DNA of 61,943 nucleotides, filler included, from Choristocarpus tenellus KU-1152 (lineage: Eukaryota > Protista > Phaeophyceae), in NCBI GenBank assembly GCA_964200185.2. It is 7 parts of 7 records of this genome, joined end to end, with 100 filler letters (N's around TTAATTAATTAA, not from the genome) between each part and the next. Parts side by side here need not be neighbours in the genome. Positions count along the whole stretch, not along the records: positions 1 to 16,225 come from CAXNAD020000856.1; 6 more parts are not named here. The stretch is one strand, 5' to 3'. Below, one piece after another: positions 1 through 16,225 of this stretch. Numbering within the stretch: the stretch's first letter is position 1; each line of letters starts with the position of its first letter. Under the pieces are notes generated by a model. It was not told where the DNA came from. It did no database searches and was given only the letters and a program-made list of their open reading frames with translations. A program made the translations under genes and the position numbers.

Positions 1-210
1 GGGTGAAGTAACTTCGGATTCGGACCATCAGTACTCTCATGTGGTCTATGGACTAGAACTTGATCGCCAAGTACGAAAATGGGGAACAAGAGACATTTGT
101 TGACACGCTCCTGATTTTTAACGTGTTCATGGAGGTTACAGTGTGCCAACTTAAATGCAACCTGTAAATTATCTTTGGTTTGCTGAGGAAACTTCTCAGT
201 AGTGACATCT

Positions 211-388
211 GATCGTGTTTGTTAGGAGATGTCAATATCCTTGCTCCGGACACACCTTTTTATAACGTACACATTTTGCCTACTCCGAAACGTTTTGGAG
301 TAGGAAAATTTCACAAAAAACCCCATGGGAAGCCAAGCCCCAATGGACAAACAGGGCAAAACTCGTACCCTCTAAGGTACTTTCACTC
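211..388 (+). mobile_element. MITE family A, 5'-truncated copy (Sola2-like non-autonomous element)
   Basis: Matches the internal part and right end (CCCTCTAAGGTACTTTCACTC) of the ~258-bp element at 45291, 47230, 47981, 49744 and 51995. Confidence 0.85.
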
Positions 389-429
389 GAATCAAGGATG
401 ATATCAACATGTAAATGAGCTGTCTTTCA

Positions 430-2700
430 AACAGAAGCAAAGACAGGGTTTCATGTAATTTTGCACCGAAAACTGCATTATGGGCTAACTGTACGAAAGG
501 GCAATTACGATACCAGGTTATCCTCAGCAACAGAGATATACATTGCTAGCATAGAATGCAACGTAGTATGTACTCTCTAACACATAATTTCCTTGGGGGT
601 GATACGGCGTGCTTTTGGTTTTGCTGTAACCAAAGACAGACTGCAACTCTGCAACGATACTATTTTCAAATTTGGTACCTTGATCGGAGTGTAACAACTT
701 GGATGGGCCAGGAATCGAGAATACGTATTCTACTGGCGTACGAGCAATTGTTGTGACCTCTTTGTCTGGAACAGGGCACAGTACCACAAAAAGAGTGAGG
801 TGATCAATTGCTGTTTTGTGCTCTACCAAATCAATAGTAACACGTTGAGATGGTCCGTCAACGGGCATATGGCCAGTGGGAAGCATAGCTTTGTTATGAG
901 CAATCTTACGTGTTTGGCATGCCTGACAATAACGGCACCATGTACGAACATCGATATTGAATGTTGGCCACCAACACGCACCTCTAACCCCATCGAACGT
1001 GGGTTGGAAACCTAAGTGGCCTCCGGATATTGCATGGTCGTGGCAGCCATGGAGTACAAGACGGACTAACGAGCGAGGAATATTCAACTGGTCTTTTTAT
1101 GTGCTCCACCTACGAAGATGACCTGGTAAGTACGAACGATACAGTAAGTCACTGCAAAGGAAATAAATACAACAAAGGTCATCGATTCCTTATCAGGTGG
1201 TAAGGCGACGTTGGGGGACTGTAAATACCTGAAATATGGTCCAAACTCACGTTCCTGCTCCTTGCGCAATCGCTCGATGTTCACTACAGGAAACAAAGTA
1301 GTGGAACTAGTAAGTAGTTCACGATAACTTTGGACGGGCATTGCTCTTGCCAATCAAGGACTGCACCGAAGGCCTCCATGACACTATTATCAAGAAGTAT
1401 TATATCAGGACCAAGTTGGATAATTGCTCCACTTCTGTCCGGAGACGTTGGTTGTGATCAGCAGAGTGTCCATAGGTCTGGAGCTTCAGGAGATCCTCAA
1501 GACATTCAGGTGGCGTGAAATTCACTCTGGTTGTGGTCAGCAGAGTGTCCATGGGCCTGGAGCTTCAGGAGATCCTCAAGTCATTCAGGTGGCGTGAAAT
1601 TCACTCTCGTGCACACGTTAATGTGGTACATGATGAATGCGGAAATAGCATCATTGAACTGTGCCTGCAAAGTGACCACCTCATCACCAGTTGAACGTGG
1701 GGGAGAAACAGGACTCTCCTGGAAAAGGACCCAATGAGTTTAACGGTAGCCCGAGCTGATACGGTACTCAACAGTCGACGACACAGTTCCTGCTTGACCG
1801 CAACGATCTGTTGGGGATAATGGGGAACCTCGTCTACGATTCATATTTCTTGCATTGTTGGACGACGTTGATGAGTGATTTGATGACGTAGAATCTGAAT
1901 TATGGTTTGTTGAAGACCCTTACGTCTTCCATTGAGCCGCTTTCGTCAGCTTTCTGTTCCTTCCCTTCCCTTGATTCCTCGAAATGTTCAGCCAGGCGCT
2001 CCTGTTGATGACCTTTTCTTCTGGTTTTGACGTTGGGCATGTTTGGTCAGTGGTTGAACAAAAAATTCACTTGTCACCCTACGTCTAAGGTCACCAGTGT
2101 CGCCAATATGAATCACGTGATTCTGTTGTGTGGCGTGGTTTACTCAGGCAAGGGTGGTGAACAGAATAACTAGGCAAGACATACCAAGACAAACCGAAAC
2201 CGAGAGGATGAGATTAAGGTTGGACAAGTGCAAGACTGCAAGGACTTACACAACAACTGAGGAGTGACTAACTGAGGATCTTGTGAGAGGGGATCATCGG
2301 AAATGTCAAGACATGAGAACAAAGTGAATCTTTGATGTTTGACAACCCTGAATGAAGAGCAGTCCCTTATCTATGGAACCAGTCTCTTGAAGAGGTTGCA
2401 TGGATTCATTCTCACGGAAGATCCTCTACTGGAATCATGGATTCCTCACAAAAAACCTCATCAATACAATGGTGTATGGCATACGGCGAATACGGTATAG
2501 TAACAAACCTGCTTTTCACAGAGGGAGGGAACATTATGGAGGATGTGGTGTAGAGTGTTACACAATCCATTCCAAAATGTAGGATGGGCTCAGTGCACCT
2601 GAGCAGACTGCGTTCAAACCTCATGAACCTAGCCAATCATGACCCAAGAATGCCATACTCTACATCAATGGCAACTCAACCTTCCTGACGAAAGTATGCA
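430..2700 (-). mobile_element. Degenerate, internally deleted Ty3/Gypsy LTR retrotransposon remnant
   Basis: ORF 524-1087 has an integrase HHCC zinc finger (HDHAISGGHLG...WWP...CQACQ) and an rve core (VTIDLV, LHSDQGTKFEN, TPYHPQGN). There is a gag-like start at ~2040 (MPNVKTRRKG) and a PBS-like TTGGCGACACTGG on the minus strand near 2094-2106. No RT seen. Boundaries approximate. Confidence 0.75.
1450..1607. repeat. 79-bp tandem duplication (2 copies)
   Basis: GGTTGTG(A/G)TCAGCAGAGTGTCCAT...GAAATTCACTCT at 1450-1528 and 1529-1607, with a few substitutions. Confidence 0.95.
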
Positions 2701-3880
2701 GTGGCACACCGTGCTATGAGGCACAGGCAGTCTTCCTTGATTCCTCAAGCTGAGAGAGTGATGAAAACAAACAAAACAAAAACAAAGATGGAAGAAGAAA
2801 AACCCCCAGAAAGTCGCTGTATCACAACAGCTGTCCAGCGTAAGTCTATTAAACAGTTCAATAACACCACTTGTAACACCACATCACCACTACCATACAG
2901 CTCTTGCTTCAAAGGTGCCCAATGCCTTCAGAGAGGTGAAGAAGGAGGCAGACCAATAATTCCCTCCTAAACAAAGAAAAAACACATGAACTTATACAGG
3001 TTCTTTGTACCTACACCTACTCACCTCAACTATAGCCCCATGGGGCAGTCATGCCAGCTAGACTCACGCATGATCACTAGAGGATGAAATTTCTCCTAAT
3101 AATAGATGCCTTGTATTCAATTTGTCACTGATAGTCTTGGGAAGCAGTGGGGAATGACCCACAGTACACATACTGCTCATAACTAGTTGAGTCAACTCCT
3201 ACCCAACCTCACCACGAATTCCTCCCATCAAGACCACCTGTGCTCCACGAGGACACACTGGTGGCAAACATCATCTACATGATCCCCCTCTTCTTGTACA
3301 ATCTTTCACAAAGGATTTAAAGAAAGGAAAGTGCATCTGCTGCCCCTCCCCCACCAGGGTCAGCCAGCTCTCCCTATTGAGTCAAGTCCATCTAGCACAC
3401 AGGCAGACGCAAGCTGATGAAACAAAATGGCCTGGAGAGCACATCTACCATGGGCCTCGAGGGGCAACCTCACCCTCCCCTGAGAAGCTCTTGTGTGACC
3501 CCATCTCCCTCATGTGTGTCTATCATTAATCCTTACCAAACCTTAGCCATTTCCACAATAAAATTTGACTTTTTCCCCCTCACCCAGACACCTAGAAAAC
3601 CTCACATCATTTCCTTGCACTGCTGGAACACCTCAGAGCCCCCCCCCACTCTACGACCAAAACCCTCCTGTCTCGCATAACAGAAGCCAAGGTTGAAGGG
3701 GACTCGAGGGTGGAGGAAGGGGGGGGGGATTCACTCTCCTTTCAACTGGTTTCCACACCCGTGAAAAATATCAACTATCGTCCTGCCTCCCCCCCCATCC
3801 TTTACTGCACACCCCACTACAATAACCACCTCATGATTACTCGTATCCTTTGCGTCAACCGCTCCATACCCTACCTCAGA

Positions 3881-6725
3881 CTAGCTCACTGCATCAGGGT
3901 GCTCAGCATCACTTCCCTCCTCGTCCTCTTCTGCTTCCCCCTCCTCCGCCTCCTCCTCCGCCTCCTCCCTCTCATGCTTCTGAACAGCACGAACAAAATC
4001 ATCATTGACCCTGCACTGTACCCCAACATAGTTTATCACTGTTCCCTCTGAGTCTCGAAGAGCTGCAATGAAGAACTGGTTCCAGAACATTGCCCCATCC
4101 ACACGGTAATTGCGGATGCAAACAGATGTGTCCTAGTGGAGCACAGGAGGAGGGGCAGTGTGGACACACACACACAGTGGTAGTTGTATTAGGCATGCAT
4201 TAGTTGGGAAGGATGGATATTGGGTCAGCTTGTAGTAGCCTCCAACTAGAACCTCACATAATCACAATAGGTTCTCTCCCCATGGCAGGGAGGATAAGTT
4301 ATTGACCAGTCTCATAGATAAGCAAGAGCCAATCCCAAAAAACTGTACTTACCCCTTCCCACATCCACATCTGCCTCATCAAACACAACAGGTATCCAAC
4401 TATATTTTAGTGGGCAACATAAAAAAGTGACACATTCCCAAAACAAAGACGGAGGGTGCCACTTGAATCTGGGTGAGGGTTTCCTCTCTCCCTGTGAATG
4501 TCTGTGGCATCACTCACCGAGCCCTGCTCAATAGCCTGTACAGATACAAGAGTTAGGGGGGGTGAGGAAATGCAGTAAGAATCAGTGATTAATCGTGCTT
4601 CATATCAATAGTGCAGCATGTTTGATTCTCATTAATACTTTGATCATGTCCTTTAAGATCAGTTTCTTCTAGGTGGAGACACTGGATACAACATAACAAT
4701 CTGTGGAAAAAAGGTAGGTCCACCCACAACCCAGAAGGGGCGCAGCATTCCATCGTCAGAAATTCTCGAGCTACTCATACATCCAATACAACAATTGACA
4801 GGCTCTATTTCAACTCACCTCTACAATCAGAGGTAACTGACAAGCAACTTGAAAAAAACTACCCAACACTCAAGGGAGAAAACAAACACATCTCACGAAG
4901 TATAGAGAGTCGAGGCTGTTGAACACAGATCACATAGAGCAAATACCCTTGTAACACATACCACAACACACACACACACACACACAAACACACTTCACAT
5001 ACTTCCCTCTCCTCAATCCCCACATTCCCAGACACAGGGCTCATCACTCAGGTGTGTATACACACGGGTCACAGTTGCAAAGAAAGTGTAACACGATTAT
5101 GGCTGCTGCTCACCTTCCGGATTTTCTCAACTGCCTTCGGGTCAGTGTCCGGGCCTTGCAGAAATCGACAGTTACGTCCCAGTATTTGGTCAAGGGTATA
5201 CCCTGTGAGCTCAAGGAACCCCTGGCTTGCAAATACGATAGGGTTGTCCGGCAGGGTTGGATCTGTGATCACAAAGTTCTGCTGTGCCGTCTGCAGGGCC
5301 TTGACCAGTGAATAGTCTGGGTCATCCAGCACCTTTGTGGCATCTCCAGGTGTGTTTGCAATCAAGCTTGAGGTTTCCGTCCTTGTCAAGAGCTCCTTAG
5401 CCTGCTCTGATCCCAGGTTCTGCCGTATTGCATTCCTTAGCTTCTCGTTCTCCTCCTGCAGGGCTGTGACACTCTTTTGGAGAGACTCTAGCAGGAATTT
5501 CTTCCTCACTCGAGAGCGCTTGGCATGCTCACGGTTACGCTCCCTGGCCACCCATTACCAACCCCAAACAGCAAGCCAGGTTGTTAAACGAAGGCAGGAA
5601 GAGTTTGATATGCAATCACATGGAAGAGGATATTAGCAATGTGTTTTGAGAGAGAAAGTGAGGAAGGAAAGGCTAGTTGAGAAAGACACAGAGGTCAACG
5701 GGGATCAAGAACTCCATTCTCAGCTGTGATCACTAGTAGTACAATATATACCAGGACATGAATAATAATGAAGGTACTACTCTCTAGATCTTCAAAAATT
5801 GTACCATGTGTTTGCATCCCTTGTTGATTAACCTTGAGGTATAGGAAGGGAAGCTAGGGATACGGCTTCAACCCACGTATTCTTGAATGATCTCCAGCTG
5901 TGGGGGGATTGACACAGATCCAAAAAAGAGCTCTCTCTTCCAGACTTGAAAGGAAAACTAGCAGGAAGCGACTCCACTACAGGTTCCCTTTTCAATAGTC
6001 ATTTCCTCATCACTGTGCACGGAATCACCAGCATCGGTCCACACTTCTATCACACTCTATCCCATACCCATCCCTACCGTATGGTGGGACAGAAAATTCC
6101 CTAGTCAAAAATATTGAACACGTGCCATGATCCTACTGTTTCCATTCAGAAAGGCACCATAATATGTATCCGTATCTCTCCCCCCCCACCTCCTCTCGAG
6201 TCTTTGTTGCTCAGTCATATTCCTGCCACTCTGACGCATTCGTTTCCCACGCTTTCCCTTATCGTCGTCGTCATCCTCCTCATCAAGTCCTGCTGCCAAA
6301 GCGGATCGCGACAACTTGTCAGCAGTTGTGGCAGCTCCCCGCGCCCGTACCTGTGTATTGGGTATTACTGATGTTTGCCCCACTACTGCGTTAGTCTGGT
6401 GCATTTGTTCCATATATGGTGGTACGCCCACCATCCCACCAGGTATCTGGGGAGGGATTATTCTCCCCGTCCCATTAAACCCTGAAATCTGCCCTGGCAA
6501 CCCTTGGGAGGTCACTGCAGTCCCAGAGGAGGCCGCTGCAGAATTGTTTCCTAGTGCGAGTGTCCCTGGTGTAATCCCGAGGAGTTCGTTATCGGATCCC
6601 ATGAAGCAGTCGGCGAAGATCTCATCGATGTTGATAAACTTGTTGCCACCGAGCTGACCATTTTCAGAGTTGGCAACCCCAAAAGTTGGAGCTGGAGGGG
6701 AGCTGTGCCCCGGCACTTGATCCAT
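3881..6725 (-). CDS. AUREO1: Aureochrome (AUREO1-type bZIP-LOV blue-light photoreceptor and transcription factor), 4 coding exons
   Basis: Exons 6725-6190, 5543-5114, 4535-4518 and 4132-3881, all GT-AG and in phase. bZIP basic region ERRERNREHAKRSRVRKKFLLESLQ is followed by a LOV domain with the intact photoactive motif GRNCRFLQG and NYRVDGAMFWNQFF...NYVGVQ. Acidic C-terminal tail. Confidence 0.96.
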
Positions 6726-7691
6726 GTTCAACACAACGTGTGGGTAGTTAGGTACCTACTACCTCCTTCCTCTGTACACAATCAAACCTATGTAATTGAT
6801 GTCTACTGGGGCCTCCAAGATAGCTTGACCCCAAAGTTAGAGCAGGTCGTTCTTGAACAAATATAGCCAAGGTCCTGCCAAAGTACACGGATGCTGCTCG
6901 CCTGAGAAATTGTACAAGGAAACGAGTGGGGGAAACAACAAAAAAATTTCAGATATTGTGCAAGGACGTCGGTCCTATTGGGTCGGATGTTGAACGGCCC
7001 CAAGGCATCGTAACCAACGAAGAGATAGAGTGCAGCGCCTTCTGGTGCAGACAAGGTCCTCTCCTCAACGAAGGTTCCACAATCAACGGAAGAAAGAGAT
7101 GGAAAGGACAACATATTTTCACCGAAGACTTGAGTTTCCCTTCGTATTTCTGCAACAACATGGTAGGAGTAAAGCACATACTGGGCATTCCTTTTTCAAT
7201 TGTGAACCAAAAGTTTGTCCCAAGGACTGGTCAATACTTAACAAAATAACCGCGTTTTCACCTATCGGTATGTTCATAAGACCAATTGAGAGTTACACAC
7301 CTGCCAAATTGTGTCGGATGGTTTAGGTTGTCTGTATTGCTATGCTCATCTTTACCTCAGGTAACAAACAAGACCCGTGCCTTCAACTCGAAGTGAACAC
7401 AGGAAACAATTTCTCCTGATATTCCGCAAATCCTTTGAGGGGTCTATCAACTAACGGTGAGCAGGTACAGCCAACTACACTGTAAGCTGTAAGTGGGTCG
7501 AAGACCCTCTGGTGCTCCGCACACAACGAAGGCCGTGATCCCCGATATTAAGGGGGTGAAGTTGAAATCGATCTCTTCAATAAAATTTGGTAGGGTTAGG
7601 GTTTACCAGACCTTCAAAACTTCCAATTTGTTGTACCATTGATGTTCACATCCAACAAGACGAGAGGGACATCTTGACACGACGAGGTAGA
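6726..7691. promoter_or_regulatory. Putative bidirectional promoter and 5' UTR region between aureochrome and UBL-SF3A2; contains a telo-box-like TAGGGTTAGGGTTT at ~7590-7603
   Basis: Only 966 bp lie between the divergent ATGs (6725 and 7692). A possible aureochrome 5'-UTR intron (donor near 7355, acceptor near 6772) would bring the start sites closer. Promoter function is inferred. Confidence 0.5.
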
Positions 7692-9825
7692 ATGCAAATC
7701 TTTGTCCAAGGTCTAGATGGGGGGCATGTTTGCATCGAAGTCAGCCCTCGGGATGGTGTGGAATATGTTAAAGCTATCGTTGAGGATGAGGTGGGAGTTC
7801 CTGCATCACTCCAACGCCTTATCTGTGGGGGGAGAGATCTGTGCGATGGCCGTCTGCTCAGCGACTATGGGATAGGGGTGGGTAGTACAGTGCGCATGGC
7901 TCTACGAATTCGGGGAGGGATTGATTTCCAGCATCGAGAGGGATCCAAGTTCGGTGGCGGTGGGGTGATGTCCGATACGCAGGCAGCTGTGGATCGGCGG
8001 GAGCGACTGAGGAAACTGGCCCAGGAGACGGTCGATCTCAACAAAGATCCTTACTTCATGAAGAACCACCTTGGAAAGTATGAATGCAAGCTGTGTTTGA
8101 CCTTGCACAATAATGAGGGGAACTACCTGGCCCATACACAGGGAAAGCGTCATCAGCAGAACCTCGCACGACGTGCGGCCATGGAGGCAAAAAATGCCCT
8201 CGTCAAGCCACAGCCGTGAGTTTTGCTACACCTCTTTTTGAACTTGTGGTATCGCTCACGGACTCGTCAGCTGATTAGTTTGAGTGTCCGGCAATATGCA
8301 TGAGGCGTGGTATAGAGTCATATCACACATTTGACCTGATTCTCTCTTTTCCAAGATTGCCAATGATTCTCCCTAGCCTCATCCTCGCCTAATGAAAAAC
8401 CCTGATCTTGATTGAAGGCTGATGAACCCAATCTTCGAAATGCGTTTCTGCGTCCAAAAGGGCGGTCACTGTACAAACCCGCAATGTGATCAAAATCGGA
8501 AGGCCAGGCTATAAGGTCACTAAGGCTCGGGATTTATCAACAAATCAACGAAGCCTGTTGTTTGAGGTGGACTACCCAGAGGCGGATGAAGGTGCCCAGC
8601 CACGACATAGGTTTATGTCTGCCTACGAACAAAAGGTCGAGGCGCCGGACAAAAACTACCAGGTTAGTGTGACTTTTATATATTCCAATTTTTACTTGTG
8701 AAGTGCTTCCACAGTAAATGAAATGCAATCCACCAGAGGATACCCGTCTGAGCTTGTGGTGTGGTTTAATTTGAACCCCCTCCATTTGTAGGCCAAGCAT
8801 CTTGTATTTACATAGGGAAGGTCGCATCCATCGATACAGAGCACTACTCCTGACAAGAGCACATGTTCAAACCAACCATGAAAACAGGGTGTGGGTGTGT
8901 TAGCGCTTTTCCCATCGATTTGGAAATGAAAAAAGAAAATATGCAACCGTGCTCTTAATCTAGGTAGTTTGATGTGGCTTCAAGCACCCCTTGACACTTT
9001 ACTCTATGCCAGAATCTGATAGTTTAGTCTGAAGCTGCTAGAAACACCCCCAAACCCCCATCTCGTAAGCTTCCACTTGTGCTACCTGTACTGCTCTTGT
9101 TGTTTTTTTGATGTGCAGTACCTCCTCTTTGCATGTGACCCGTATGAGACAATTGGTTTCAAAGTGCCCAACCTGAAGATCGATAAGGTGGAGGGGCATT
9201 TTTTCACCAACTGGGATAAGGAGGCAAAAAAATTCACAGTGAGTGTGTGCTGTTGTGTTCAAGAAGTGCAAGATTTCCCATGTGCTACACACGGTCATTG
9301 ATATCATTTGTTTGGCAAGGGTCCATCTATAGTGGCATGCCGGCAATACGTTTCTCAGTTGTGTGAGCTCAAGGCATTTGCCATTTGTCAAAGCACTCTC
9401 AACAGTAAATTATTGAGTATGCCCCCTATTGTGTTGCCAAGGTGCCAGAGGAAGTACACTTTTCAGTTATTTGTTTTCTGATTCACTATAAAGGTAGCAT
9501 GGCATCTTCTTACTGTATGTAAAATGAGAGCTGAACTTATTTCATGGTTGAAACGATAGAACAGGCCCAACGTAATGTGAACATTAAAGGTGCAGTAGTA
9601 TGTATGTACATGGGCTTTTTTATTGCTGGCGATCTTTCAGTCACCGATCAAGTAAACTCAATTCCGTTCTTCAGACTCCTGCTACTGCCCTTGCATTGAC
9701 CTCAACACTTCTCATGCACCTGTTCTCTAATATCCAACACGTCAACCCTATCCCTCTTGTATCCCTCACATGCCACTCACACACCTCAGCTACAACTTTA
9801 CTTTGAAGATGAGTCCAATTCATGA
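7692..9825 (+). CDS. SF3A2: Fusion of a 76-aa ubiquitin-like domain to splicing factor 3A subunit 2 (SF3a66/Prp11), 4 exons
   Basis: Exons 7692-8215, 8461-8662, 9119-9238 and 9790-9825 (LQLYFEDESNS*), GT-AG and in phase. Residues 1-76 are ubiquitin-like (MQIFV...QRLI...LSDY...LRIRGG). The rest is typical SF3A2: IDFQHREGSKFGGGG, DPYFMKNHLGKYECKLCLTLHNNEGNYLAHTQGKRHQ (matrin-type Zn finger), KIGRPGYKVTK, PRHRFMSAYEQKVE, YLLFACDPYETIGFKVP. Confidence 0.96.
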
Positions 9826-11471
9826 CATGGATAAGGTATGGCATCGCTGTGTGAGTCGAAAAGTTGAAGGGAGTATTATTTGAGTGAATGTTGATCGCCA
9901 AAGCAGAGTTGCAGATGTAACAGGGCAAGGGGCAGACTTGAGGGTTATCATGTAGCCCCAGGTACAATTCGTTGCCTTTATAAAGTTTGCCGGGAGGTAT
10001 TGTTTCTTGCTATAGCCAATGCAACCAGATCTATTAGGATCCATGACCACAAGGGCATCCTGAACCCCTTGAGATAGTCAGTGTTATTTGTGTAAGACAG
10101 TTGGGTTAGGTCTTTCAGTGTTGTCATTCCTCACGAAAGTGATTTTGTTAAATGTGGTGCACATCACCATGTGTTTGCTTGGCAGATATATCGTACCAGG
10201 TCTTTGGTGGTCTGCTGATGCAAATGAGGAACTGCTGGGACTGCAAATGTGACTGGGGGCTGGGGTTGATGTACACTTGGCCTTTGTCTCTGAACTGATG
10301 TAGTTTAAACCAACAACTCAAGACTTACCTTTCACTACATCAATCCTGGGGAATCTGCACAAAATCCCCTGGAAGCACGAGCATGGTATTGCATGAAGGG
10401 TTTCATGTCCCTTCTCCTATACAGGACACACACAATTGACTCTCTTCCAATGTGTTCAAATTGATCCAACCACTGACAGTACACTTAAGAGCATAGAGTT
10501 AATGCGAATCCGGAGTCTCAGGAATGCTTACCCGCCCAATGATAGGAAATGGAGTGATCCTTCCACTTGTTCAACATGTCTACAGTGAAACATTTCAAGG
10601 TGTGTAAGTTATCAGCAGTGTGTAATGTTGCTGTAATCAGCTGGGGATCTTGATGCAATCATTCCAAATGTCAGTCCATATTTTGCATTGAGTGCAGGTA
10701 TGAAGAAATGGTCGAGACAGGCATTGATTGTGCTATGTTACACATGTTGGTTGCCCTTAAGTGTATCTGGCATCCACAGTGAGATTGCAAGAAAAAAAAG
10801 GTTTGTCTTACTAAGGCAGTATAGATTCCATGATAAATGCCTAGTGCACCATGGTACCAATCTTGCTACCAGAGTATAAATCATTACATCAAAGGTGTGG
10901 TCCATGAACTGAAAGGATTTCATAAAGCTGAAAGTTGGGGACAACATCTTGACTGCACCTTCAACCCAAATACATGGGCACTGGTGCAAGTGCAAACAAC
11001 TTCTATCTGAGGTCTTGTTTAGGACCTTGCCAAAACATCATGGTAGAAATATACAACTAGGTCTGCACACTCCAAAGCAGTCACACACTGGGTGCAGTTG
11101 GTATCTACAGAAACTTATTCTGTAAGAAAATAAAAGAGCGTGGTTTATCCCCAACATAGTACCTGCATGTGGTTAGTGTCGAATCTCTGTACAGTTGTTG
11201 GCTGTACATCTACAAAAACAAACATCAAGCTCTCACTTGTACACGAAGAAAAAGTGTAATTTCACCACACAAAGGATACTAAAATAAATATATATGTATG
11301 TATATCTACTACCCAAACGTCAACAGTGCACACAAAATAACATGCAAAAACGGAATATGCAAGCCCAATTAAACAAGGCAAGGAGTAGTGCATACTTGTG
11401 CAGCTACACCTCACCCCATCATACCATGCCAGCACCAGGTAGGTTCCAATCAAAAACCTGCAGTGTGAGAG

Positions 11472-14400
11472 TCAGCTAAGAAGCACTGGAGCCTTACAAA
11501 AAATTCGAACTTTACCCTCGTAGTCCGAGGCCAGGATCATGCAACTGAGGTAACCTCCAACATCCGCTACATCCTTTGACAACCCTCCACGAACAGCGAT
11601 TACACAAGCACGTGCTGCACTCTCCGGAACAAAGGCTGCAACAGTCACAATGGAGGGATCTCCCTCAGTGGCAACAAACGATTCATGACAGCGGTTCGTG
11701 TCTTTGGCGCCACTGCTGCTACTGCTGCTGCCACCAGAAACCGCTGCCGTTTGGGGCCGTGATGTACCAGATGTGTTCCACACATACACCTGCATTTCCC
11801 CAAGCAGTCGGGGGGGTTTTAGAGGGGGGGGAGGAGGGACCAAGGTATAGAAGGAATTAAGCCTGTCCGAGGGGNNNNNNNNNNGGGCGGAGTGACGGGG
11901 TGTGTCCAGGGCGGCGGCGGGGGGTGGCGCAGGCGGGCGGGGGGGGGGTGGGGGGGGGGGGGGAGGGACCAAGGTATAGAAGGAATTAAGCCTGTCCGAG
12001 GGGACTGGGTGTGTGTGCTGTGTTCATGAAATGCTGAAGTCGATTGCTATACTATGCATAGTGTCAACCAAAAAACCGTTGATTCATACAATTAGCTCCT
12101 GCTTCATGTTCATGGTTGAAGAATGGCATGTATCACGCACTATACACTACATTCCATTCAGTTGCTTCGTAGAAGAACTCTCGTGTAACACTGCAGGAAA
12201 TTTCCTAGAGTTGCTGAAATTGCCCTCATTCAAAGTACACTGGTTCCTTTAGAGGGAATTGATTCTACAACAACATTGTACTGCATGCTTGCAAAGGCAT
12301 GAAAACATCACTTTCCAGCATGTTACCACTCTACCCCTATCTGCATCCATTCTCAAGTTAGACACACTATGAGTAAAGAAAAATATTGATCACTATAATG
12401 TCAGATTGGCAGCATTGCATTTTCCAGAAGATTGCATGCAAAGGTCTTCCAACTAAGGTTGCTTTGCAGCTGTAGTACCAATAGTACATAAGAGGAATGC
12501 AGTCTTTGTTCTCAAGGCCACCTACTATTGCAACTACACACATACATGGCCTGACCCTTCCATAGTCTTACTTCTAATATAAACTAAGCAAATTTAGAGA
12601 ATCCCTCCTATCTAATCAAAATTACAGTACCTGCAATTTGCTCTCACATGTGAGTGTCAGGTCTTGAAGTTTGTCTCTTTAGACTTACAATGTAAATAAC
12701 TACTCCATACACTAACTTCTAAGACACCCATTCTTTTAGAGATACGAGACAACCCAACATCAATAGCCCTCCTTCAGAAAGAATAATAAAAAAGCTCTAA
12801 ATAACCCAATCCAATAGAAAAAATTGCCTCACACCTTTCCATTCTCTGACCCGCTAATAATAAGGCGACCATCCTCGCTGAAGCTGGCCTTGATCTGCAG
12901 GCTATCATTACTTAGCCCCTTGTACTTTGAGCTCATTGCAAAGTCCTCGGTGTTGTACAGGCGGAGGCGGGAGTCATTGGTTGTCACCAACACCTCTTCA
13001 TCCACAGCACCAAACTTTTTACGAGCACATGCCAGTGCACCCCCTTGTACCCCTGCACCACCGCTGCCACCAGCAACATCCCCTGCCTTGGTGGTGCCTG
13101 AGCCCTTGAATGCCAACCCAGTTACCTTACGCCCACTCTTAAGTGGCCCCCGCCTGTTGCGGCACTCTATTTGGGTGAAGTAACGCATACCTTGAGTCTG
13201 GTAAAAGAGGACCTGCTCAAAGGTAGGACAAACAAACACACCACGAACACAGAATATTAGGGCGCAACAACGACATAGTGCTGTTTTCTTAAATGTTTCT
13301 ATACTATCCTGCGAAGTAGGAGGGCTCTACACAACCCCACTACCTACTGATAAGGCTGCCAGCGAGAGCAAGACCCTAATCCTAAGTAGTCCACATGACT
13401 GAAATCATGGTACAGGATGAACACAAACGTGTTTACTGGGCAACCCAACCACTCATAGCCAACACGGGTTGTCCCTATAGCTAAAGATGTTATCTGAGAG
13501 CTCCATACACTCACCTGCCCCTGGTACAGACCAGCAATTATCATCTGCCCATCCCTGCTGAACCTTGCAGCTGTGACCATACCAGGTGCCTGCTGCCACT
13601 CCTGCACCCGCCCATCCCGTATGTTCCACACACGTACCTTTTTGTCAAAGCAACCTGACAAGAAAAGGTGCTCAAAGACGGGGTGAAAGTCCACAGAGGT
13701 GACAATATCAGAGTGAAGGAAACAGTGCAAGCAGGCCCCCTGGGAGACATGCCAAAGTCGAACCGTCTTGTCCAGTGAGGCAGAGAGAAGAAAATCGTTG
13801 CGCGACCATGTCAGTTCGACCACATCACCCGTGTGACCCTCAAAAATACGGAATGTGTCCTTCTCCAACAGGCCAGGCACCTTCACCGCAGGCCTTTGAA
13901 GAGGTGAAAGCGGCGATGGCAGAGATGATGACAGTGGAGAACTAGCACCCCCCACACCACCCACCCCTGGCACATCGGAGCTCATGCTGCTACTGCCTCT
14001 AGTACCCCCAGGCAAGGTTGGTGAAGATGGAATTGACATTACCTCAATGCTTGACTCACTCTCAGAATTTGGTTTTGGGTGTGGCAACAGGACACCTGGT
14101 TCACAAATGCCAGTCTCCTTTGCGGCCAGCCCTTTATTGGTGCCCTTCCCATCACTGCCACTGACACAGTACACTCGGACCTTGGTATCCTGGCCAGCAG
14201 TTGCCAAGAATCTTCCTGTGTGACTGAAGGCTGCTGTCCACACCGGTCCCGTATGGTGGCACAGCTCTTGAAAAAGCATCAACCCCTCCAGCTCACTAGT
14301 GTCTTTCCCCTTAAATGATATCTGAACCCCACCAGAAGAAGTGTCACTAACAGCCTTCCTACTTAATCGATCACAACCCCCATTCCCTGAAACCACCACT

Positions 14401-16015
14401 GCAGAAGCCACCTTACCAATCCCATCTCGTACCAACCTGCCAATGGCCAAGGCCTTTGCCTTCCCACGGGCACTGCCAATGCCACTCTGCCTCTCTTCAC
14501 CCACCCCATTCCTTGGCAAATTTGAAGAGGCTCCCTGGCTGTATTCACTATCTGCACCCTCCCTTGCCCCGATTTGTCCTTTGGAGCGCCGACGCTCCAG
14601 CTCCATCAAGAGCTCTCGACTGGGAAGGAGGGAATAGTTCACTGATGGGAGGTGCTTCTCAAGATCCCGCATATCAAATACCTCTCCTGTATCCTGGTTA
14701 AGCACCACAAGAAGGTGGTTTGTAGTGACATAGGTTGGAAAGGATGGAGATCTAGCATAGGATGAGGTACGAGGCATTGTCAAACTGATTGAACTTCACA
14801 GTTTTAGCATCTAAGGGCTACTTACCACGAGGTGTAAAACAGTTGCATAATGGAGGATATCAGAGATTTAGCTACCCACAAGAGAACAGAACCACCCTGA
14901 ATATATATCTATGAACATACATCTTCAAAAATGCTGTCCTCTCACTTCGACCGGGTCAGGCGACATATTCTAAAGTTCAGTCAAATGATGCCAGCCCCAA
15001 CATATTGGGGCTGGCATTGAAGAAATTCCTGCCTAGCAACCATTGCACAATAAGCTCCGCCAGAATCTGTAAATTTTGGTACTGGATACCCTGTAGGCAG
15101 TTGAAAACCATCCAAGAGTCAAGAACAGCATCCTGTCGGAAGCAATTTTCTGTCCGTCTGAGAAAGAATCGAGTGAAGTCTGTCTTGCTCCATGTTGGAA
15201 TTCTATATGATTCACGGACTTTGGTTAAGGACTTTGCTGACCTTGTTCACCAACATATATTTCCTGTCTTCTTCGCTCCCATCTACGGGTGGGAAATTCG
15301 ACGTTGAAGTTGTGCCATCCGCTGCAGCGTCGCCGTTTCCCTTGACCTGTTGCTGAGGGCCGACAAGACCTTTTACACCCACCGACACTCGTGGCGGAAG
15401 AGGTGGAGGCGTGATCCTTGAGTTGGTGGCTGAAAAATTGGCAGCTGTGGTAACACCGAAGCTTCCTGGGGGCGTATTTGGAAAGTAGGTTTCTCCTTGA
15501 CGGCTAGACTTCGCCATGGGAGTGGACTCAGCGCTACTGATGTCCGAAACCACCACACGCCGTTGAGGTGCCACAGGGGAAAGTTCGCCCTTTGCAGTAG
15601 CAGCGGGCACAACTGTCATCGGTGTAATGTGGTGAGAGGAAGGATTTCTATTTCCTGAGGTAATCCCCCCCAATGCCTTGGGTGAAAATTCACCAACTGG
15701 AGTCTTCTCCGAATCGCAATCTTGGCGTTGTTCAAGTTGCAGGATAGACGACGTCCGTAGCGCACTTGTGGAGGAGCTGCTACGACACAGATCCATCGTT
15801 TCCAAGGCATCGTAAAATTCATCATCTCCTATAGAACCGTCGGAAGACAGAAATTGCAAAGCTGCTGCAGTACCTGCAAGAGAACCACCTGGCGCATGGG
15901 GAGTAGGAGACCAGAGGTCAGTGTGCGTGTAATGAGCCGTTAGACTCTTGGACTTCGAATTTGTCGCCGATGTCAACATTTCAGAGTAGGAGTTCCTACC
16001 TGCCACACCGCTCAT
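11472..16015 (-). CDS. WD40-repeat protein, WDR44/rabphilin-11-like, 4 exons
   Basis: Exons 16015-15242, 14693-13515, 13212-12835 and 11789-11472. WD repeats: HTGPVWTAAFSHTGRFLATAGQD, GHTGDVVELTWSRNDFLLSASLDKTVRLWH, HSDIVTSVDFHP...FLSGCFDKKVRVWN, and VTTNDSRLRLY...QIKASFSEDG...SGSENGKVYVW, as in the WDR44 family. Start Met uncertain. Confidence 0.88.
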
Positions 16016-16185
16016 AGCCCAGACGGGAAGCACGTAGAGGGTTGCACAAAGACGAGGCAGGTTAGACAAACACTCCACTCTCCCTCTCTCTCTGATCCGC
16101 GCGCAGAATGTTCTTGGGTTGATACTAGCAGTAGAAATGTCTATGTATATTGTAGAACCTTAACGTATTACCGAATATTAGTTTA

Positions 16186-16225
16186 TTTTATTATTATGCC
16201 CTGTGACATTTTGCAGATGTGTCAG
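16186..16225 (-). repeat. Hairpin/(TAA)n-tail short repeat, copy cut by the gap
   Basis: TTTTATTATTATGCCCTGTGACATTTTGCAGATGTGTCAG matches the copies at 36300, 36767, 58240 and 61847. Confidence 0.85.

Follow-up and report, generated by a model that had tools for sequence, protein, structure and literature searches.

A ubiquitin-like domain joined through Gly-Gly to the first residue of the spliceosomal protein SF3A2 in Choristocarpus tenellus and other stramenopiles: a probable cleavable precursor

We report the computational analysis of a gene from the brown alga Choristocarpus tenellus KU-1152 in which the core spliceosomal protein SF3A2/Prp11 is encoded directly behind, and in frame with, a ubiquitin-like domain (UBL) that ends in Gly-Gly. 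The window, by which we mean the whole stretch of DNA analysed, comprises 61,943 nucleotides of assembly GCA_964200185.2, filler included, and is made of seven parts of seven records joined end to end with 100 filler letters between each part and the next. The gene lies on the plus strand of the first part (positions 1 to 16,225, from CAXNAD020000856.1), and positions are counted along the window throughout. Its features, each with the evidence on which it was placed, are these:

7692-8215 (+): exon 1, closed by a GT donor at 8216 and by an RNA joint from 8215 to 8461
7692..7919 (+): UBL, codons 1-76, MQIFVQGL...MALRIRGG (PF00240, alignment to human ubiquitin, AlphaFold2)
7914-7919 (+): the Gly-Gly codons closing the UBL (sequence)
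7920..7922 (+): ATT, encoding Ile77, at the site of the SF3A2 initiator Met (alignment to human SF3A2)
7920..8215 (+): remainder of exon 1, with the SF3A2 N-terminal arm IDFQHREGSKFGGGG and a matrin-type C2H2 zinc finger at about 8079-8153 (PF12874, zf-met)
8216..8460 (+): intron 1, 245 nucleotides, GT..AG (spliced contig of sequencing run X3)
8461..8662 (+): exon 2, first half of the SF3A2 beta-sandwich domain (PF16835, RNA joints, translation equal to that of database protein P0001)
8663..9118 (+): intron 2, 456 nucleotides, GT..AG (joint from 8659 to 9116, which fits as well when shifted rightward by 3 nucleotides)
9119..9238 (+): exon 3, second half of the SF3A2 domain (PF16835, RNA joints)
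9239..9789 (+): intron 3, 551 nucleotides, GT..AG (joint from 9238 to 9790)
9790..9825 (+): exon 4, LQLYFEDESNS and a TGA stop at 9823-9825 (RNA joint, translation)

The four exons amount to 882 nucleotides, that is, 293 codons and a stop. The reading frame opens with the ATG at 7692; in-frame stops lie upstream, and between the last of these and 7692 there is no in-frame ATG. Codon 76 of the UBL, the ATT and the codons for DFQHREG follow one another in a single frame that is broken by no stop, linker or intron. The UBL aligns without gaps to residues 1-76 of human ubiquitin, with 39 of 76 positions identical, which reproduces the count given, together with the LRIRGG ending at 7919, in an earlier note made from the sequence alone; against the ubiquitin of Choristocarpus itself the figure is 37/76. 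Relative to ubiquitin it carries K48R, K63V, H68R and V70A, and we do not class it as ubiquitin proper.

Domain searches against Pfam place ubiquitin (PF00240) at protein residues 3-72 with an E-value of 1.4e-14 and zf-met (PF12874) at residues 130-154 with an E-value of 2e-7, and the SF3A2 domain (PF16835) is matched above the cut-off both around exon 2 (8495-8665, E 5.7e-17, 67.6 bits) and around exon 3 (9110-9235, E 3.9e-11, 48.9 bits); these values are far beyond chance. Residues 1-215 of human SF3A2 (PDB 5z56, chain v) align to residues 77-290 with an E-value of 7e-96 and, since that alignment begins at human residue 1, Ile77 occupies the position of Met1, as the earlier note had proposed in reading ATT for the usual start codon. 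Whole-protein searches were made with P0001, a 293-residue database protein titled "unnamed protein product", which is 100% identical to translated exon 1 and matches our reading of exons 2-4. With the zinc finger, the beta-sandwich domain and an N-terminal arm of the form xDFQ[HN]R all present, the sequence identifies the protein as the SF3A2/Prp11 orthologue. An AlphaFold2 model gives the UBL a beta-grasp fold with a predicted local distance difference test score (pLDDT) of 90-96 and the SF3A2 beta-sandwich (residues 190-290) a score of 73-90, mostly above 80, while residues 75-94 fall below 50; the junction between UBL and SF3A2 is thus modelled as flexible and exposed.

The locus is held by three sequencing runs of one study, of which two give DNA-like, unspliced contigs at a depth of 5-16. 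In the third, X3, exon depth is about 630 and intron depth 0-50, and since its contigs are spliced and deep we took this run for RNA, its record carrying no RNA label. A 1238-nucleotide X3 contig is colinear with 7300-8215 and is joined from there to 8461-8659/62 and on to 9116/19-9238; the joint from 9238 to 9790 is found on an overlapping X3 contig at a depth of about 540, and every segment skipped in X3 is bounded by GT..AG. Because a single spliced contig spans both, the UBL and SF3A2 are carried by one mRNA and no intron separates them, so that the in-frame UBL-IDFQHREG fusion described in the earlier note is confirmed by transcript as well as by genome sequence, and its proposed check, RNA across the junction, comes out in its favour. 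Coverage in X3 runs past the TGA as a 3' untranslated region to at least position 10100 and, upstream, extends to about 6590, across the first coding exon of a divergently transcribed neighbour. The high-depth RNA contigs that bridge the intergenic interval of about 6590-7692 may reflect overlapping transcripts or a long 5' untranslated region of the SF3A2 gene.

A six-frame search for PF16835 through the whole 164-Mb assembly, which is fragmented into 27,310 contigs, found a single SF3A2 locus and no separate canonical SF3A2 copy. The case that could have overturned the fusion, a silent locus beside a canonical gene, does not hold for the assembled sequence: one locus was found there, and it is expressed, though in so fragmented an assembly a copy may have been missed.

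The fusion is by no means confined to the Choristocarpus lineage, as the earlier note might have led one to suppose, and spans ochrophytes and oomycetes. The best 120 database matches to exon 1 all carry xDFQ[HN]R and nearly all have an N-terminal extension, several of the fused matches being transcriptome entries flagged as complete open reading frames. (The whole-protein search of representative sequences was dominated by polyubiquitins, and only its SF3A2-type rows were used.) The groups in which the fusion was found are these:

brown algae: Discosporangium, Ectocarpus, Hapterophycus
xanthophytes: Heterococcus, Tribonema
chrysoparadoxophytes: Chrysoparadoxa
raphidophytes: Heterosigma, Fibrocapsa
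chrysophytes and synurophytes: Ochromonadaceae, Mallomonas
diatoms: Fragilariopsis
oomycetes: Thraustotheca, Pythium

All 112 members (100%) of the nearest ESM Atlas cluster have SF3A2, and 45% have ubiquitin; its commonest phylum is Oomycota. Named haptophytes (Diacronema, Chrysotila) and named animals have the usual Met start of SF3A2, and the ubiquitin-fusion inventories of Bigelowiella (Rhizaria) and Guillardia (a cryptophyte) hold no SF3A2 partner (PMC6332867).

For the junction, 150 homologues of SF3A2 were surveyed, each extended at the N-terminus by 55 residues or more. In 143 of them Gly-Gly directly precedes SF3A2 residue 1; the others comprise three with Gly-Gly and one further Ser or Ala, one with AG, and three whose extensions are apparently unrelated and mis-modelled. 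Among the 143, position -4 is hydrophobic in 141, position -3 is occupied by 16 different residues, Arg being found in 51, and position +1 is Ile in 119, Met in 21, Val in 2 and Leu in 1, with Pro in none; Met or Val thus follows Gly-Gly in 23/143, about 16%, and the residue after Gly-Gly is in every case one compatible with a deubiquitinase. When 40 diverse full-length fusions are aligned, G75 and G76 are the only invariant columns of the UBL, against more than 50 in the SF3A2 part. The hydrophobic core is nevertheless kept (ubiquitin positions 3-5, 15, 17, 23, 26, 30, 43, 50, 56, 61, 67, 69, 71 and 73), while the ubiquitin residue is found in only 5% of fused UBLs at I44, 25% at K48, 2% at K63 and 2% at V70; overall identity to ubiquitin has a median of 30% and lies between 12% and 97%. 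On this comparison the fused UBLs appear to have retained the fold and the Gly-Gly and to have lost the functional surface.

The same pattern is seen over the shorter distance between Choristocarpus and Discosporangium, where the UBL shows a non-synonymous divergence (dN) of 0.216 and the SF3A2 part next to it one of 0.009. Synonymous sites are saturated (about 0.9 differences per site), so that the comparison rests on dN and on the proportions of non-synonymous and synonymous differences (pN and pS), with no dN/dS ratio. As the pN of 0.19 in the UBL lies far below the saturated pS of 0.89, the domain is fast-evolving and yet constrained.

In the diatom-type sequences the junction reads ...LLGG/IDRQNR, the slash marking the boundary with SF3A2, and the UBLs are swollen by 100-300 low-complexity residues: P0155, P0161, P0169, P0185 and others have N-terminal regions of 100-365 residues, in which the UBL strands are apparently split by long Ser/Thr-rich inserts while the end is kept as ...R[LI]LGG/[IM]DRQNR. 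At the other extreme stand three environmental transcript contigs, P0327, P0285 and P0337, in which canonical or near-canonical ubiquitin, at 96-100% identity, is fused to IDFQ[HN]R, and these sit in clades whose other members carry diverged UBLs. Because three environmental clusters carry ubiquitin or a near-copy of it, ubiquitin itself is suggested to have been the original fusion partner. Its presence could be a retained ancestral state, the outcome of gene conversion from ubiquitin genes, or an assembly chimaera; the last is unlikely, as there are three separate clusters, of which one has 7 members on several contigs and one bears four substitutions relative to ubiquitin.

On a tree of the SF3A2 part (128 rows, obtained by a quick search) the distribution of fused and canonical forms needs 9 changes, compared with 43 when the labels are shuffled, and the well-supported branches require at least five; several rows that count as "canonical" yet fall within fused clades have the look of shortened gene models, MSG-IDFQHREG being one example. 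The fused state thus appears strongly clustered, in a manner compatible with one origin or with several. Taken across the stramenopiles, or at least the ochrophytes and oomycetes, these comparisons indicate a fusion that is old and maintained by selection.

Linear fusions of ubiquitin to a protein X are cut in vivo unless X begins with Pro. We propose that the single expressed SF3A2 gene of Choristocarpus is translated as a precursor in which the Gly-Gly of a ubiquitin fold is joined to SF3A2 residue 1, that a deubiquitinase most likely cuts this precursor after Gly76, and that the cut would free a dispensable, fast-evolving UBL and a mature SF3A2 with Ile, not Met, as its first residue. Cleavage is inferred because the fold and the Gly-Gly are kept, no linker intervenes and the next residue is not Pro, while the sequence is otherwise free-running. 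Precursors that deubiquitinases cut, among them FUBI-eS30 (PMC8354635) and Sde2 (PMC9508853, PMC6486553, PMC13572447), show the same pattern. We hold a UBL-SF3A2 precursor, cut after Gly-Gly, old and under selection, to be the best overall explanation and a distinctly probable one, and nearly as much confidence attaches to the particular step by which cleavage after Gly76 would yield Ile-SF3A2. The putative processing by a deubiquitinase suggested in the earlier note therefore gains much ground from the retention of Gly-Gly in 143 of 150 homologues whose UBLs drift.

Where the N-terminus of SF3A2 lies within the spliceosome bears on what such a cut would achieve. In structures of the Bact (activated) complex the N-terminus lies within the spliceosome active site, and in other eukaryotes the N-terminal arm helps there to keep the 5' splice site's first nucleotide in place (PMC5835773); together with RNF113A/Cwc24, SF3A2 shields the 5' splice site (PMC5835773, PMC10208982, PMC10943123). 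A folded domain of 8.5 kDa on SF3A2 residue 1 would be hard to fit into that site. Because the arm reaches into the Bact active site, removal of the UBL is probably needed for SF3A2 to function. As to what the fusion might confer, possible benefits would be help with the folding or solubility of the disordered N-terminal arm, such as ubiquitin gives to ribosomal proteins fused to it, control of the chemistry of the mature N-terminus, or an N-degron on unassembled SF3A2.

Several points weigh against a cleaved precursor. Cleavage in stramenopiles is so far a prediction from sequence comparison, and the structural argument draws on human and yeast complexes rather than stramenopile ones. Most fused UBLs, to judge from their sequences, have no I44 patch, the surface that many deubiquitinases use, so that a dedicated protease may be needed, as FUBI has in USP36. 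In a few homologues the exact Gly-Gly boundary is replaced by GGS, GGA or AG. Finally, the sequencing runs are kept as contigs, which are blind to minor isoforms, to strand, to transcript ends and to a transcription start site downstream of the UBL.

The nearest parallel to the proposed precursor is Sde2 of fission yeast and human, which has an N-terminal UBL and is activated when a deubiquitinase cuts after Gly-Gly (PMC9508853, PMC6486553, PMC13572447). Like Sde2, SF3A2 here is a spliceosome protein translated behind a ubiquitin-fold domain that ends in di-glycine; in Sde2 the C-terminal product joins the spliceosome and its new N-terminal residue can feed an N-degron pathway (PMC9508853, PMC6486553, PMC13572447). 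Sde2 is, however, an unrelated accessory, intron-specific factor and not a core U2 small nuclear ribonucleoprotein (snRNP) subunit, its fusion is wide across eukaryotes whereas that of SF3A2 was seen here only in stramenopiles and environmental eukaryotes, and its cleavage has been demonstrated whereas that of the SF3A2 fusion is a probable one.

The ribosomal fusions Ub-eL40, Ub-eS31 and FUBI-eS30 resemble the SF3A2 fusion in that ubiquitin or a UBL is linked directly, through Gly-Gly, to the first residue of one component of a large ribonucleoprotein, and the SF3A2 UBL has, like FUBI, diverged far from ubiquitin while retaining Gly-Gly. In the ribosomal case the moiety has to come off before the particle can work: a non-cleavable FUBI-eS30 blocks 40S maturation (PMC8354635). 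They differ in that the SF3A2 partner is spliceosomal and that its range is one lineage rather than pan-eukaryotic. The algal fusions Ub-NiSOD, Ub-actin, Ub-P1/P2 and Ub-HMG box likewise place a single N-terminal moiety in frame with an unrelated protein, are patchy among protists and are easily overlooked by automatic annotation (PMC6332867), though in the SF3A2 fusion the moiety is mostly a diverged UBL and not ubiquitin. The SF3A2 fusion thus joins a known class of ubiquitin or UBL fusion precursors, within which its core spliceosomal partner and its lineage-wide spread are what set it apart.

A second UBL fusion was met in the same genome (G000:C1218, locus L009, 979-1284, plus strand), in which a 76-residue UBL ending NVNGG stands directly before a complete 25-residue eL41, MRAKWRKKRMRRLRRKRRKMRQRAR; Pfam matches in this frame are ubiquitin (E 2.8e-13) and Ribosomal_L41 (E 4e-8). 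Sibbald 2019 (PMC6332867) makes no mention of a UBL-eL41 fusion.

Of the other readings, the one that survives best is a refinement of the cleaved precursor rather than its competitor. In yeast and mammals an N-terminal Ile or Leu counts as a type-2 destabilising residue, and the Ile exposed by cleavage could act as a type-2 Arg/N-degron, by which unassembled SF3A2 would be degraded while the assembled protein is protected; this is the proteolytic control point put forward in the earlier note. Ile in 119 and Leu in 1 of the 143 junctions agree with this, UBR-box genes are present in the Choristocarpus genome, and in Sde2, likewise a splicing factor, cutting off the UBL uncovers an N-degron residue (PMC6486553). 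Yet in whole clades, namely xanthophytes, oomycetes and some diatoms, the position is taken by Met (21) or Val (2), neither of them a type-2 residue; a change from ATG to ATH takes a single base and is neutral once the codon no longer initiates translation; a hydrophobic side chain may simply suit the fold; and the UBR-box and ClpS-like matches lie on different contigs, so that a UBR1-type type-2 site is at most putative. We consider this refinement unlikely on balance. Proteins that start Met-Asp are normally N-acetylated, which an Ile exposed after translation would not be. A joint reading, in which protease-gated maturation of the U2 snRNP across stramenopiles, SF3A2 bringing its N-terminal arm to the 5' splice site only once a deubiquitinase has taken off the UBL, is combined with a never-acetylated Ile N-terminus that marks unassembled SF3A2 for N-degron decay, seems to us just as speculative.

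Somewhat more doubtful again is the possibility that the UBL stays attached as a permanent domain of SF3A2 and serves as a docking module for protein or RNA in the U2 snRNP. Purifying selection acts on the UBL, whose fold is retained, and there is a precedent in the same complex for a UBL that is not cut off (PMC6795144, PMC8833184): SF3A1/Prp21 is also an SF3a subunit with a ubiquitin-fold domain, which is C-terminal, uncleaved and bound to U1 snRNA (stem-loop 4) through an RGG-containing tail. The UBL of SF3A2 is instead N-terminal, has no conserved Arg before Gly-Gly and abuts a conserved, functional N-terminus. No conserved surface is evident, Gly-Gly alone being invariant in the 40-sequence alignment; diatom UBLs carry inserts of 100-300 low-complexity residues, and in some lineages plain ubiquitin takes the same position. 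That no linker residue is present in 95% of cases is more in keeping with a protease site than with a hinge between domains, and, were residue 1 to bear a folded domain, a clash with the placement of the SF3A2 N-terminus in the active site would be expected. The particular form of this alternative raised in the earlier note, an attached UBL that binds RNA through an RGG-type tail, is disfavoured further and was rejected: the would-be RGG Arg occurs in only 51/143 sequences, position -3 accepts 16 residues, and what follows Gly-Gly is no basic tail but the N-terminus of SF3A2.

The SF3A1/Prp21 gene of Choristocarpus (G000:C150, 18363-27135, plus strand) encodes two Surp domains and PRP21_like_P, and leaves its contig within a proline-rich stretch, ahead of the C-terminal UBL region. 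A UBL-containing gene at about 750-2280 on the plus strand of G000:C13103 was considered as a candidate for the SF3A1 UBL and seemed an unlikely one, its downstream frames resembling by eye a protease gene of WLM/Wss1 type.

Least probable is that the freed UBL is the product that matters, as a conjugatable modifier or as extra ubiquitin produced in parallel with SF3A2. Once released, the UBL would terminate in Gly-Gly, the moiety is ubiquitin itself in some lineages and ubiquitin is normally made from fusion genes (PMC6332867), but identity to ubiquitin has a median of 30% and falls as low as 12%, I44, K48, K63 and V70 are lost, large low-complexity inserts occur in diatoms, a modifier with its own E1 and E2 partners would be expected to evolve slowly, and real ubiquitin genes are present in the Choristocarpus genome.

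Other features also lie in the first part of the window. On the minus strand, and divergent from the UBL-SF3A2 gene, lies an aureochrome-like gene with a bZIP and a LOV-type PAS domain (5069-5551 and 6105-6734; PAS_9 with an E-value of 8e-11, bZIP_2 above the cut-off), and the same head-to-head bZIP and PAS neighbour is found in Discosporangium (L033) and Ectocarpus (L034, L035). Close to where the contig begins there is a fragment of a retrotransposon-type integrase (524-1087, minus strand; Integrase_H2C2, E 4e-17), and a run of X, the assembly's N, lies in an open frame at 11472-11972. At 12829-14783 on the minus strand lies a gene with three WD40 repeats (E 2.5e-25), and an open frame rich in Ser and Pro that matches no Pfam family, upstream of this gene at 15212-16078 on the same strand, may be its 5' part.

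A full-text search of open-access papers and bioRxiv found no published description of a UBL-SF3A2 fusion, in agreement with the earlier note, although an earlier mention elsewhere is possible; splicing does not come up in the principal survey of ubiquitin fusions in algae (PMC6332867). The combination of UBL and SF3A2 is nonetheless visible in precomputed Pfam annotations, and fused entries stand in the databases under the names "unnamed protein product", "Matrin-type domain-containing protein" or "splicing factor 3A subunit". UBL fusions, it follows, are under-reported by automatic annotation.

SF3A2/Prp11 is essential and near-universal, and ahead of the first step of splicing its initial residues are placed at the catalytic centre. 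Should kelps, diatoms and oomycete plant pathogens, a large group of ecological importance, have to process SF3A2 by proteolysis before it can be used, this would be an added post-translational step of assembly that has not been described for core U2 snRNP proteins and, after Sde2, a second independent case in which the processing of a ubiquitin fold feeds the spliceosome; maturation of the U2 snRNP gated in this way would tie splicing capacity to the ubiquitin system. The fusion is also a candidate shared derived character for stramenopile phylogeny and, in the oomycetes, lineage-specific processing of an essential protein would be a point of difference from their plant and animal hosts.

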